A DNA stretch of 64,000 nt from Mytilus californianus (GCF_021869535.1 NW_026262659.1:8432001-8496000); one strand, 5' to 3'; positions 24,701-26,589 are shown, counted from the first letter of the stretch. A program made the numbers and translations. Notes: a model not told the origin generated them from the letters alone.

Positions 24701-25792
24701 TATAAATACTTAGAAGTTGATCTATGTTTTTTTCAACCTAAAATGTAGAGTGTCTTTTGGGGCTTTAACTACTGTAAATTAGAAGTTCAAATCTCATTGA
24801 AAAATTAGGCCAAATAAGACTCTTATTCCACATTGTCCCATACCAGATTGTTAAGGGGATAACAGAGTATGGGTTCTACATTTATTAAAGTCGGTTTGAT
24901 TTTCATAGCACTGTTTGGTGAAAATGCCATCAGCAGATATTCCACACAAGTACATTATATACTGAGTTTATTCACATATGTCTTTGGAAAACAATATTCT
25001 GAATGCTTCTTTAAGTTTGAAACAACTACAAATCTCTGTGTTTCCAGATTGAAAAAGTGCGGAAAAGAATTTTATTTGTCTATAATATCTCTTTATATTG
25101 ATAATTTTAATTTTGCTTAATGAATATAGTTTTTAATTTCTTGACTCTTCTGATGAGAATTTATCCCACATCCTATCTTTTTTTAAATTATGATATCACA
25201 AAACTGTCATTAAATTAACCGGGACATTTATAAGGTATTTAGTTGATTTAATTTATCTTTTCTCATGTTTCAGATTTCAATTATAAATCTACAAACATAA
25301 TATGATATGTATATATAGACTTTGCATACCTTGAAGTATTAACTATATTTTCAGTATTACTTGAATTTATATACATCCAATTACTTAAAAATGGTGGATT
25401 CAAACAAGACAGAAGATGAATCGAGCAAAGGGGCGTGTGGATATAATGGCTATCTAAAAATGAATGGTGAACCGTCACACTATACAAAAATGGAGCAAGC
25501 TTCACCTCATCCGACTGATCAGAATAAGTTCAATGAAGATATCGACGGTAACAAAAGCCGCTACAACAACAAAGAACAGTGGTGTAAGGAGAAATCTTGT
25601 CATATCGAACTTCAACCATTGAGAGTAAAAGAAGATTGTGATAATGTCATATCACGTCAAACAAATAAACCTCAACAACCTCAACAATATATTAATACTT
25701 CCACATACAGTCAAAGAAATGATGACACAGTTACTGAGGATTCGAATACACGTGTCCCTGTTTCCACTGTTAAGGAGAGGATCGATATCTGA
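567..25792 (+). CDS. Pvr: Gene 1: PDGF/VEGF receptor-like RTK, 5'-partial. 13 exons, ~628 aa in window: last Ig domain, TM, split kinase, shortened tail
   Basis: Exons spliced by hand give one open frame with [70 protein letters not shown]. All junctions GT-AG with matching phases. Symbol is family-level only. Confidence 0.95.
873..1710 (+). mobile_element. 3' end of a related retroelement ORF plus long 3' tail
   Basis: Frameshifted [39 protein letters not shown]...LHRK*. The tail 1460-1710 recurs at 11365-11625. Confidence 0.55.
2145..2245 (+). CDS. Gene 1 exon B, Ig domain C-half ([33 protein letters not shown])
   Basis: tttcag|t acceptor, g|gtatgc donor, 101 bp. G-x-Y-x-C motif. Not in the ORF track. 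Confidence 0.93.
3255..3296 (-). ncRNA. Decayed minimal type I hammerhead-like motif in a dispersed repeat
   Basis: Minus strand GCGUUC-CUGAUGA-AGGUAAAACAU-GAAG-UGCGCU-UC-GGACGC. 6-bp helix I and GCGC palindrome present, GAAA changed to GAAG. Confidence 0.4.
3467..3603 (+). CDS. Gene 1 exon C, transmembrane ([28 protein letters not shown])
   Basis: ttttag|gc acceptor, ctg|gtaagt donor. Hydrophobic helix followed by basic stop-transfer residues. Confidence 0.95.
3771..3900 (+). CDS. Gene 1 exon D, juxtamembrane (HKELER...[16 protein letters not shown])
   Basis: tttaag| acceptor, g|gtaagc donor, 130 bp. LPYD-x-KWEFP motif of class III/V RTKs. Confidence 0.96.
4570..7615. mobile_element. Foldback-type element: ~1.15 kb internally repetitive inverted arms around a ~725 bp loop
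   Basis: 5642-5729 pairs with 6455-6542. Collinear inverted similarity continues outward, e.g. 4791-4830 vs 7400-7437. Outer ends approximate. Confidence 0.72.
6638..7072. repeat. 42-bp minisatellite, ~10.4 near-identical copies
   Basis: Unit gtatccaaatacttgtcaaaagtatgccgatggtgtttatat at 6638, 6680 ... 7058. Confidence 0.98.
8014..8118 (+). CDS. Gene 1 exon E, kinase subdomains I-II (LGQGNFGRV...VAVKTAK)
   Basis: ttttag|gt acceptor, g|gtaggc donor, 105 bp. Confidence 0.96.
8198..8630 (-). mobile_element. Dispersed non-autonomous repeat (caagtcaggaatatg family)
   Basis: Reverse complement of 26590-26990. Confidence 0.8.
9490..9790. repeat. 45-46 bp minisatellite, ~6.5 copies, with a 91-bp dimer period
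   Basis: Units start aagcatt/aagtatt at 9490, 9535, 9580, 9626, 9671, 9717, 9763. Confidence 0.92.
9974..10373. repeat. 98-bp perfect direct repeat (9974-10071, 10276-10373)
   Basis: ggatttacctctgg...gaacgaagccacttgt present twice, 302 bp apart. Confidence 0.95.
10413..10460 (-). ncRNA. Heavily decayed hammerhead-like motif, second type
   Basis: Minus strand CUAAUGA-GGC-UUAUAUA-GAC-GACA-UAUGC-GUC. Both core boxes mutated. Confidence 0.3.
11036..11155 (+). CDS. Gene 1 exon F, alphaC to subdomain IV
   Basis: gccag|at acceptor, g|gtaagt donor, 120 bp. [25 protein letters not shown]. Confidence 0.96.
11365..11625 (+). mobile_element. Dispersed repeat, copy of 1460-1710
   Basis: Shares gtcccaagtcagga...ggcctttgttagtcttgtatg...ccccatttccattctcaattttat. 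Confidence 0.85.
11810..12460 (-). mobile_element. HINE/Helentron-like non-autonomous element
   Basis: Terminal hairpin (caccccg...ttggggtg), (gtcc/gtct)n microsatellite, degenerate ttgacct-containing internal repeats. Confidence 0.6.
12769..12989 (+). CDS. Gene 1 exon G, hinge plus short tyrosine-free kinase insert
   Basis: ttttag|gt acceptor, aag|gtggtt donor, 221 bp. [12 protein letters not shown]...[13 protein letters not shown]. Confidence 0.95.
13302..13424 (+). CDS. Gene 1 exon H, catalytic and activation loops ([11 protein letters not shown])
   Basis: tttcag| acceptor, gat|gtaagt donor, 123 bp. Confidence 0.97.
14124..14194 (+). CDS. Gene 1 exon I ([24 protein letters not shown])
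   Basis: ttttag| acceptor, gt|gtaagt donor, 71 bp. Confidence 0.96.
14161..14660 (+). repeat. 45-46 bp minisatellite derived from the 3' end of exon I and its splice donor, ~11 copies
   Basis: Unit taacacatcaaatctacaccactaaaagtgacgtgtaagttatctc. The first copy is the exon itself. Confidence 0.95.
15594..15830 (+). repeat. ~240 bp segment duplicated at 19273-19339 plus 19579-19755
   Basis: aataatccttaactgtaaac...atacctatatacttcaggattatacatcttgtatacatg...gaattgtatt shared. Confidence 0.9.
16200..16830 (+). mobile_element. RT-thumb-like retroelement 3' remnant (Penelope-like, tentative)
   Basis: [39 protein letters not shown]...KLLNQ...[13 protein letters not shown] plus conserved tail. No RT core in the window. 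Confidence 0.65.
17293..17333 (+). CDS. Gene 1 exon J, 41 bp ([13 protein letters not shown])
   Basis: cttag|a acceptor, g|gtaagt donor. Subdomain IX. Confidence 0.95.
17639..17768. repeat. ~130 bp imperfect palindrome (MITE-like)
   Basis: tatcatatggctttttcaatatcaca...tgtgatattgaaaaagtcatatcata. Confidence 0.88.
17813..17877. promoter_or_regulatory. Three perfect CRE palindromes (TGACGTCA) in a 28-29 bp tandem repeat
   Basis: TGACGTCA at 17813, 17842, 17870. Function untested. Confidence 0.45.
18038..18680. mobile_element. Hammerhead-like repeat family copy interrupted by a second repeat (18120-18450)
   Basis: gatttaccttcaccaggaac and gaccaaaagggacctaaaaaatagccaaattc shared with 3255-3420 and 44600-44740. 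Confidence 0.55.
18860..18959 (+). CDS. Gene 1 exon K ([32 protein letters not shown])
   Basis: tgatag|gc acceptor, tt|gtaagt donor, 100 bp. Confidence 0.95.
19340..19578 (-). mobile_element. tRNA-derived SINE with 13-bp target-site duplication
   Basis: Minus strand A-box-like ggtggcctagtg and B-box-like gagtttgaatccc. TSD tatatataaatac at 19327-19339 and 19579-19591. Empty site at 15652-15664. Confidence 0.75.
20690..20930 (+). mobile_element. Dispersed repeat (gtcaggaatatgacagttg family), older copy
   Basis: Similar to 28180-28467 and 30460-30742. Confidence 0.7.
21490..22656 (-). mobile_element. HINE/Helentron-like element(s)
   Basis: aaaatcttctcctctgaaactact unit twice (~484 bp apart). 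The end acacaggctctttagagcctctagt is the reverse complement of 62861 and 53661. Confidence 0.7.
22660..23300 (-). pseudogene. Decayed L1/Tx1-clade LINE reverse transcriptase fragment
   Basis: Disrupted frames resemble [15 protein letters not shown], (Q)[12 protein letters not shown] and KRTLS...[11 protein letters not shown]. Confidence 0.7.
23533..23638 (+). CDS. Gene 1 exon L ([35 protein letters not shown])
   Basis: tctag|g acceptor, cag|gtatac donor, 106 bp. Subdomain XI, RP-x-F motif. Confidence 0.95.
25355..25792 (+). CDS. Gene 1 terminal exon M, C-terminal tail of 145 aa ending ERIDI*
   Basis: tttcag|tat acceptor. Collinear with the gene 2 tail until the indel near 25760-25773. Confidence 0.92.
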   Translation, partial: YYLNLYTSNYLKMVDSNKTEDESSKGACGYNGYLKMNGEPSHYTKMEQASPHPTDQNKFNEDIDGNKSRYNNKEQWCKEKSCHIELQPLRVKEDCDNVISRQTNKPQQPQQYINTSTYSQRNDDTVTEDSNTRVPVSTVKERIDI

Positions 25793-26589
25793 TAATAAAG
25801 CGAGACCAGGCGACGAAATGTGAAATTTATGTGTAGTAAAGGGAGACATTTTTTTTTAACAAAGGAGATAAATCATGGCCTGTTGATTAAAAATAACAAA
25901 TAATTCAGGAATGTCGTAATATTTTGTTAACAATTACATGGCTTTATTTTTATCATGACTAAATGAATGCTTGTAATAGACTTATTTTAGCTTCAGACAG
26001 ATTTTAAACGGATAATAATTTGTCAACATGCAAATATTGTTTTATTTATTTTGGTGTAAATAGCTATACTGTGGGTTTAACAGTGAGTTCGTCTACAGGG
26101 ATATTGTTTTATGTTTTATGTTTTTTGTTTTCATGTGTGTTTACTGTTTGGTCTTACATGATCTTACCTTATATTACAGTTATTATATTTTTATTTTCTA
26201 TATGTATATAAAAGTTAAGATAAAAAATCAGCTACTTAATTTATATTATTTTAAGTTTAAAGCAACTATATGCACGGGATTTTTTTGTTTATACACAGTT
26301 TTGATTTAGAAGAAAAATCGACATAGTTTGAAAATACAAATAATGACACCATTACAAACACAATTCCGTTTTAATATTCTTGTCTTGGTTAGAAAATACA
26401 TAACACCATTACAAACTCAATCCCAATTTAATACTCGTGTACGTGTCTATAAATAAAAGAAATCTATCTTATTTTTAGAAATTTACCTGTGGTAATATAA
26501 ACGTCATAAAAATACATCACTTTTTGCGACGTTGATCCATGCATGTGACGCTCCTGGTGTGCTGTCGTAAATTCATGGGAGGTGTCCGT

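Follow-up and report, generated by a model that had tools for sequence, protein, structure and literature searches.

Receptors that still bind their ligand but have lost signalling handles are known in several forms, including the kinase-impaired ErbB3, the decoy-like VEGFR1/sFlt1, the tail-truncated TrkB.T1 and FGFRL1. Among the short motifs that matter here, PPxY is a ligand of WW domains and Nedd4-family ligases, DSGxxS is the beta-TrCP phosphodegron pattern, and YxxM is the pattern for the SH2 domain of p85. In this work, we examined a 64,000-nt stretch of Mytilus californianus DNA (GCF_021869535.1 NW_026262659.1:8432001-8496000; hereafter the window, with positions counted from its first letter), which is AT-rich animal DNA (~31% GC) and carries two related receptor tyrosine kinase genes, gene 1 and gene 2. 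The predicted gene 1 tail is ~54 residues shorter than that of gene 2 and ends KE[RK]IDI. Our analysis indicates that gene 1 is probably a live receptor paralogue that lost this tail through an old deletion plus a frameshift, within a general decay of the tail after duplication. The locus would offer a datable case of a duplicated receptor tyrosine kinase losing its cytoplasmic signalling tail by a last-exon deletion and a one-base frameshift.

Comparison of the whole window with itself revealed 13-15 colinear conserved blocks, which run from ~540 to 25.8 kb on the plus strand and from ~62.0 to 39.4 kb on the minus strand and are all open in reading frame in both genes. The 5' end of gene 1 lies outside the window, and statements on the integrity of this gene cover the exons visible in it. 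Since gene 2 is on the minus strand and gene 1 on the plus strand, the two are convergent paralogues. At their 3' ends, self-BLAST and MAFFT alignment matched positions 25344-25794 (+) to 40074-39614 (-) at 78% identity, and paired 25820-25913 with 39480-39386 at 81% identity, the latter corresponding to ~90 nt of similarity in the 3' untranslated region (UTR). The duplication that gave rise to gene 1 and gene 2 is placed within the mussel lineage, at a synonymous divergence (dS) of ~0.5.

The two genes part ways in their last coding exon. In gene 1, this exon (25355..25792, +; acceptor AG at 25353-25354) comprises 145 codons plus a TGA at 25790-25792 and ends KERIDI, while its gene 2 counterpart (40063-39464, -) comprises 199 codons plus a TAG, has the ancestral tail, and runs on through PPPTY to a terminal SETLV. 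The exon junction of gene 1, between VKQ and YYLNLY, is the same as in the database models P0001 and P0014. Two lesions set the gene 1 tail apart. The spacer between the VP codons and GGAGAGGAT (25760..25773, +) measures 14 nt, versus 21 nt in gene 2, and the shifted frame runs into a TGA (25790..25792, +) that was pre-existing out of frame within the ancestral YLIP codons. Furthermore, the alignment shows a large gap of 1 + 107 nt, equal to 36 codons in the old frame; the boundary of the ~107-nt deletion, with which the PPPTY-encoding region was lost, falls at ~25819-25822 (+). The abandoned frame can still be followed at 25774..25836 (+) as 20 residues ending EIYV, now mostly 3' UTR, and closes at the ancestral TAG (25834-25836) in a TAG-TAA-AGGGAGA context common to gene 2; the 3' UTR stretch behind it (25837..25913, +) has ~81% identity with that of gene 2. 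An AATAAA hexamer, which is a candidate poly(A) signal only, is situated just 3' of the new stop (25794..25799, +), at the place of ATACCC in gene 2.

An initial annotation of this DNA had reported the unequal spacers, the KERIDI end with its TGA, the fossil frame open to the ancestral TAG, the shared stop context with the 3' UTR similarity, and the AATAAA hexamer, and alignment and translation reproduced each of them, the opposite strand of gene 2 being the one point to add. The alignment also bore out its proposal that a ~108-nt net in-frame loss took PPPTY and that the frameshift took YLIP and the terminal motif. The chance of a 20-codon open frame in AT-rich DNA is ~0.2 by estimate, and the openness alone would not be significant; the match of the fossil frame is therefore based on homology at the nucleotide level.

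To which of the two tails the ancestral state belongs can be read from other sequences. When the gene 2 tail was used in a word search, ten proteins were recovered; nine of them (P0004-P0012) match over most of the exon with 42-77% identity, and one (P0013) over its first third only. Several of these gene-2-type hits stem from metagenome assemblies (ENA ERZ, JGI), which we take to be host DNA of other mussels. Their alignment showed a series of motifs consisting of GACGY-x-GYLKM and DYTKM (two YxxM sites), a PPPP stretch, DDTDSGHSS, G-x-DGYL[IV]PK and PPPTY. All nine tails that extend this far have DSGHSS without variation, PPPTY is present in eight of nine (PPPTH in P0005), and the tails close with an acidic stretch whose last residue is V in eight of nine, P0011 ending NHV. 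In the last exon of gene 2 (-), the corresponding sites are GYLKM (39970-39956), DYTKM (39940-39926), DSGHSS (39685-39668), YLIP (39622-39611), PPPTY (39514-39500) and SETLV (39481-39467). Because nine gene-2-type tails at such identities keep these motifs, the long tail is the ancestral state, as the initial annotation had assumed. The reverse polarity, with a short ancestral tail and a long one gained by gene 2, has nothing in its favour except the formal symmetry of a two-sequence comparison; the long tail occurs in nine gene-2-type sequences, including loci at dS >1, which are older than the duplication (dS 0.5), and we regard this alternative as practically negligible. The dS from gene 2 to two of these distant loci, L003 and L004, is 1.3-1.9 (saturated), which is far above the distance between gene 1 and gene 2. 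The search thus defines a conserved ancestral set of tail motifs across bivalves, namely two YxxM sites, DSGHSS, DGYLIP, PPPTY and a terminal V.

The functional labels attached to these motifs fared unequally. The gene 2 terminus had been called a class I PDZ ligand (S/T-x-V-COOH), which requires S or T at position -2. Among the ten gene-2-type tails, only that of gene 2 in the window fits (T-L-V), and the others end in I-P-V, V-P-V, I-D-V, N-H-V or N-L-V, with the terminal V alone in common. Because T at -2 is restricted to this gene 2, conservation does not support such a ligand. The D-G-Y-L-I-P of gene 2 resembles the pY-hydrophobic-x-P/hydrophobic docking sites for the PLC-gamma SH2 domains in VEGFR2 and PDGFR-beta, which may serve as a lead. 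A Pfam scan of both tails matched no family. In gene 1, the conserved HYTKM site (YxxM type) is retained; the tyrosine of the first YxxM site is variable (Y, N or I) within the M. edulis complex. At the place of DSGHSS, gene 1 has VTEDSN (25730-25747, +), a loss through plain substitutions that the initial annotation did not list.

Are the lesions real, and are they private to this genome? A word search with the gene 1 tail identified two Logan genomic contigs, L001 and L002, which align to the window across intron, exon and 3' flank at ~77% identity; an exact-protein look-up of the window gene 1 tail open reading frame in the contig collection gave no match. The protein cluster of L001 includes M. 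trossulus XP_063415820.1 ('VEGFR kdr-like') and M. galloprovincialis VDH95156.1, and every member of it ends VPVST[PL]MSKEKIDI. We also compared two gene-1-type loci in assemblies, that of M. edulis (L008, CAJPWZ010000193.1) and that of M. trossulus (L009, CM071715.1, GCA_036588685.2). The results showed that a spacer of 20 nt between VP and GED, one below the 21 of gene 2, and the same TGA occur in L001, L009 and the models P0014, P0015 and P0016. In the alignments, the boundary of the ~107-nt deletion is identical in window gene 1, L001, L002 and L008 as well as L009, and PPPTY is gone from the first four through this shared deletion.

The reads explain why the spacer in the window is shorter still. 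In DNA run X1, positions 24767-25921 are spanned by a 1157-nt Logan contig, which differs from the window in 2 places and has no insertion at 25768. DNA run X5, from the same organism in another study, is heterozygous, with one reference-like haplotype and one in which CCCATA is inserted behind 25768 (depth 45/79), giving a 20-nt spacer. This +6 haplotype also has an in-frame 3-nt deletion at 25664, and it stays in the shifted frame, reading VPVSTPIVKERIDI up to the stop. Hence the net difference of -7 given by the initial annotation is right as a length, gene 1 being 7 nt shorter, and wrong as a single event, for it combines an old -1 frameshift with a young in-frame deletion of 6 nt. Only this further 6-nt deletion, which the window haplotype carries, is still polymorphic. 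The suggestion that the frameshift itself might be recent or polymorphic does not hold: the copies of M. trossulus and M. galloprovincialis and those of the M. edulis type, which are separated from the window gene by a dS of 0.25-0.31, have the -1 as well.

These data also bear on whether the shift could be an artefact of assembly or sequencing, or else a rare allele private to this genome, with the real gene 1 reading through to EIYV. In favour of this, the X1 contig has two additional letters and an organism-B contig has six, at unplaced positions, and the best DNA source may be the very sample behind the window assembly. In contrast, the same frame and TGA are found in GCA_036588685.2, VDH95156.1 and the Logan contigs of SRR29152242 and SRR15505944, and the second X5 haplotype adds six bases with the shifted frame kept. 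As reads and independent Mytilus assemblies all keep the shifted frame and none restores EIYV, the assembly error that the initial annotation had named as its refutation is excluded for the clade, and we give an error or private allele very little credence.

We then dated the lesions by synonymous divergence. In the kinase exons, the dS from window gene 1 is 0.26 to M. trossulus L009, 0.31 to M. edulis L008 and 0.50 to gene 2. Since the lesions are shared at dS 0.26-0.31 and the duplication stands at dS 0.50, they arose after the duplication and before the gene-1-type copies radiated. By this sequence dating, both predate the split of the window gene from its M. trossulus/M. galloprovincialis counterpart and from the M. 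edulis paralogue. The distances to the M. trossulus, M. galloprovincialis and M. edulis sequences are those expected if the window comes from a Mytilus species outside the M. edulis complex. An order of deletion first and frameshift second is suggested by one point only, that the net loss is a multiple of three (prior for a net in-frame loss, 1/3).

Three further ideas about the sequence around the new stop were set aside. The AATAAA hexamer as a conserved new poly(A) signal was weakened, since it is present in L001, L002 and L008 and is AACAAA in M. trossulus L009; moreover, zero RNA reads reach it, so that its use is unsupported. The 3' UTR similarity as a conserved regulatory element was rejected, because the distant gene-2-type loci L003 and L004 do not have it, and it therefore reflects the age of the duplication rather than a deeply conserved element. 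Recoding or read-through into the fossil frame also found no support: this frame is still open in L001 and L009, where its final residue is E, not V, and the substitutions in it lack a coding pattern.

Having placed the lesions in time, we asked what selection has acted on the two parts of the protein, using the ratio of nonsynonymous to synonymous substitution rates (dN/dS) counted exon by exon on codon alignments with our own Nei-Gojobori script, not a likelihood model. For the gene 1 tail, dN/dS was 0.94 between the window and L001 (121 codons, dS 0.21) and 0.88 between the window and L009 (133 codons, dS 0.20). For the juxtamembrane and kinase exons, it was 0.16 between the window and L009 (338 codons, dS 0.25), 0.14-0.17 in the three pairs within the gene 1 clade (dS 0.26-0.40), and 0.13-0.17 in all pairs of gene 1, L008, L009 and gene 2 (326 shared codons, dS 0.26-0.56). 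The tail and kinase ratios differ with a Fisher p of 1.6e-5. The gene 2 tail gave dN/dS of 0.08-0.13 against L003 and L004 (182-183 codons), values that are rough because dS is saturated there (1.3-1.9). Three-point branch lengths assign at least 90% of the amino-acid change in the tail since the duplication to the gene 1 branch. Among individuals, four of the four listed single-nucleotide polymorphisms in the tail are non-synonymous, compared with one of three in kinase exon K8. Indels in the tail are all multiples of three (5/5): those between the window and L009 measure 6, 30 and 6 nt, and the polymorphic ones 3 and 6 nt. The simplest reading of these values is a translated tail under very weak sequence constraint, joined to a constrained kinase.

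In the initial annotation, a stepwise loss of down-regulation and scaffolding handles was proposed to yield a longer-lived or differently localised receptor; in an adaptive version of this, PPxY, YLIP and the C-terminal motif would have been removed because selection favoured such a receptor. It is true that all conserved tail motifs past the two YxxM sites are gone while the kinase is still constrained, that the truncated type persists in Mytilus and has even increased in number (window gene, L008 and L009), and that the big loss is net in frame, as are the tail indels. However, the dN/dS of 0.88-0.94 extends over the full length of the tail, retained parts included; DSGHSS was lost via ordinary substitutions; more disruptive changes are tolerated in L002 and L008; and even the first YxxM tyrosine varies in the M. 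edulis complex. Because of this whole-tail ratio of ~0.9, the substitutional loss of DSGHSS and the further disruptions in L002 and L008, the pattern looks like release from constraint and not like selected removal of specific motifs, and we find an adaptive removal rather unlikely.

We therefore return to a live paralogue with a decaying tail. The gene 1 branch lost ~108 nt, net in frame, at an early stage, and with them the region of PPPTY; the deletion of a single base between VP and GED, probably the later of the two lesions, shifted the frame into the existing TGA; and the window haplotype afterwards lost six more bases in frame, a change still segregating. Exon-junction-dependent nonsense-mediated decay (NMD) should not act on stops in the last exon. 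Since the new stop is in the last exon, NMD should not apply, and a truncated receptor with an intact kinase should be made. Having shed most docking and turnover motifs, gene 1 might signal through what is left, chiefly HYTKM, or might partner or modulate full-tailed receptors. The frameshift would then be one step in a general decay of the tail, rather than a targeted adaptive change.

Several observations weigh against this reading, and some of them speak for gene 1 being a young pseudogene with the frameshift as one disabling lesion. Expression is scarcely visible: in the 6% of one RNA run that was covered, about two reads fall on the gene 1 exon (25376-25583), and none lies over its stop or 3' end. 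These reads differ from the window at ~8 positions and therefore may stem from another allele or a paralogue. The relatives look damaged as well. The exception to the in-frame indels of the tail is L002, in which a further 8 nt are deleted twelve codons upstream of the stop, so that translation would end even earlier. In M. edulis L008, kinase exon K7 has lost 1 nt of a homopolymer, which may be an assembly error, and a stop-bearing segment of ~178 nt from the tail exon is tandemly triplicated (L008:11926-13177); as ~178 nt is not a multiple of three, the tail frame is broken there. The M. trossulus model XP_063415820.1 starts inside a repeat derived from the transmembrane (TM) exon and lacks the ectodomain. 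Because L008, L002 and the M. trossulus relatives look damaged in these ways, the gene-1-type clade may be sliding towards pseudogenes. To these points come the counting method behind the dN/dS values and the roughness of the gene 2 tail ratios, and a dN/dS near 0.9 fits relaxed constraint or constraint mixed with diversifying selection alike.

A dead gene would account for the near-neutral tail, the scarce RNA signal, the kinase-exon frameshift and scrambled tail exon of the M. edulis relative, and the M. trossulus model in which a 10-kb exon-derived satellite stands upstream in place of the ectodomain. On the contrary, the gene 1 exons in the window are all open with intact catalytic motifs, and a kinase dN/dS of 0.14-0.17 at dS 0.26-0.40 is not attainable if the gene has been dead since the frameshift. 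In addition, all five tail indels are multiples of three, and the K7 lesion of L008 is located in a homopolymer and could stem from the assembly. A young pseudogene is thus distinctly improbable in our judgement.

A functional alternative goes a step beyond the live paralogue. Gene-1-type copies might form a Mytilus-specific, kinase-competent and motif-stripped subfamily, of three or more diverged members (the window gene, the M. trossulus/M. galloprovincialis type and the M. edulis L008 type), which has been selected as modulators or heterodimer partners while the tail drifts or diversifies in frame. We put this forward tentatively, as a possibility that we doubt more than we believe.

Several observations were made on the neighbourhood of the relatives. 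Upstream of the juxtamembrane exon in M. trossulus, L009:1-10109 consists of a 64-nt unit repeated 158 times in tandem over 10 kb (93% match); the unit corresponds to the 3' half of the TM exon with its splice donor (VITLVVWVICVLYKRKTVALVS), and its reading frame is open in every copy. XP_063415820.1 begins at a Met in the last unit of this array. In M. edulis, annotators split the L008 gene into two models, one of 545 aa and one of 211 aa (P0001), and a further VEGFR-like gene follows this copy head-to-tail on the same strand.

Similar structures exist in the window. Eleven tandem copies of a 46-nt unit, made up of the 3' end of kinase exon K5 and a GTAAGT donor, are located at 14157-14659 (+), so that the real donor precedes ten decoy copies of the exon end and donor; this array is common to L008 and L009. 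Dispersed SINE-like repeats (short interspersed nuclear elements), at 23608-23815 in the last intron of gene 1 and at 26104-26500 downstream of it, stand out by a very high depth of contigs in every DNA run and by RNA reads whose loose ends resemble poly(A).

As for the receptor class, the exons of gene 1 upstream of the tail (542..23641, +) include two immunoglobulin (Ig)-domain exons, the TM exon (about 3478-3609, +; open in frame and colinear with gene 2), a juxtamembrane exon and kinase exons K1-K8 with a short kinase insert, while those of gene 2 (43532..62007, -) comprise Ig, TM, juxtamembrane and kinase exons with a long tyrosine-bearing insert. In the translation, a hydrophobic TM stretch can be recognised with YKRK behind it, and most of the ectodomain is outside the window. 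Homology searches were run exon by exon, on single exons. The Pfam family PF07714 (PK_Tyr_Ser-Thr) matched four separate gene 1 exons, and I-set matched one (23.6 bits versus a cut-off of 23.7); the L008 gene models gave I-set and Ig_3 matches and one faint VEGFR1-3_N_Ig-like match. Catalytic motifs, including DFG, are intact in gene 1. Against PDB, exon K4 matched VEGFR1/2 with E values of 1e-16 to 1e-15 and KIT, PDGFR and FGFR with 1e-11 to 1e-10; the best match was VEGFR2 for exon K8, and PDGFR-alpha and VEGFR2 for exon K2. The Pfam match on exon K3 skips the kinase insert (residues 2-70 on profile positions 76-119). This insert is ~20 residues shorter in gene 1 (12771-12980, +) than in gene 2 (49563-49274, -) and lacks the three tyrosines of the latter (DYVDP, PYYVN); the short form is common to L008 and L009. 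Given the Pfam kinase matches, the borderline Ig match, the intact motifs and VEGFR1/2 as the best PDB matches, both genes are, by the features tested, assigned to the VEGFR/PDGFR class of receptor tyrosine kinases.

The oyster is reported to have single members of the VEGFR and PDGFR families (PMC4883820). Compared with these, gene 1, gene 2 and the further gene-1-type copies of Mytilus point to a lineage-specific mussel expansion of VEGFR-like receptors with two tail types, which the present case flags. In the literature on mussel and bivalve VEGFR paralogues, we found no paper that describes the tail difference or these genes. RefSeq already lists the truncated protein, with a generic name, and the case is one of ordinary divergence after duplication that overturns nothing.

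With respect to known systems, the mussel receptors resemble VEGFR1/VEGFR2 (KDR) and the invertebrate PVR in an insert-split kinase and, going by the exons in the window, in a putative Ig ectodomain and single TM segment. They differ from VEGFR and PVR in the mussel set of tail motifs (two YxxM, DSGHSS, PPPTY and a terminal V), which was found only in the gene-2-type sequences recovered. Like ErbB3, sFlt1, TrkB.T1 and FGFRL1, gene 1 is a receptor copy that has lost cytoplasmic docking or regulatory motifs and by analogy could be a modulator or heterodimer partner; unlike them, it has an intact and constrained kinase, its losses being the C-terminal tail and the tyrosines of the kinase insert. 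In contrast to splice isoforms, the loss is genomic, through deletion and frameshift rather than alternative splicing. It is similar to that of frameshift-truncated duplicates that escape NMD, with a -1 shift in the last coding exon into a pre-existing stop and a fossil frame left in the 3' UTR. Unlike disease alleles or recent polymorphisms, however, the frameshift of gene 1 is fixed across several Mytilus lineages, together with a decaying tail.

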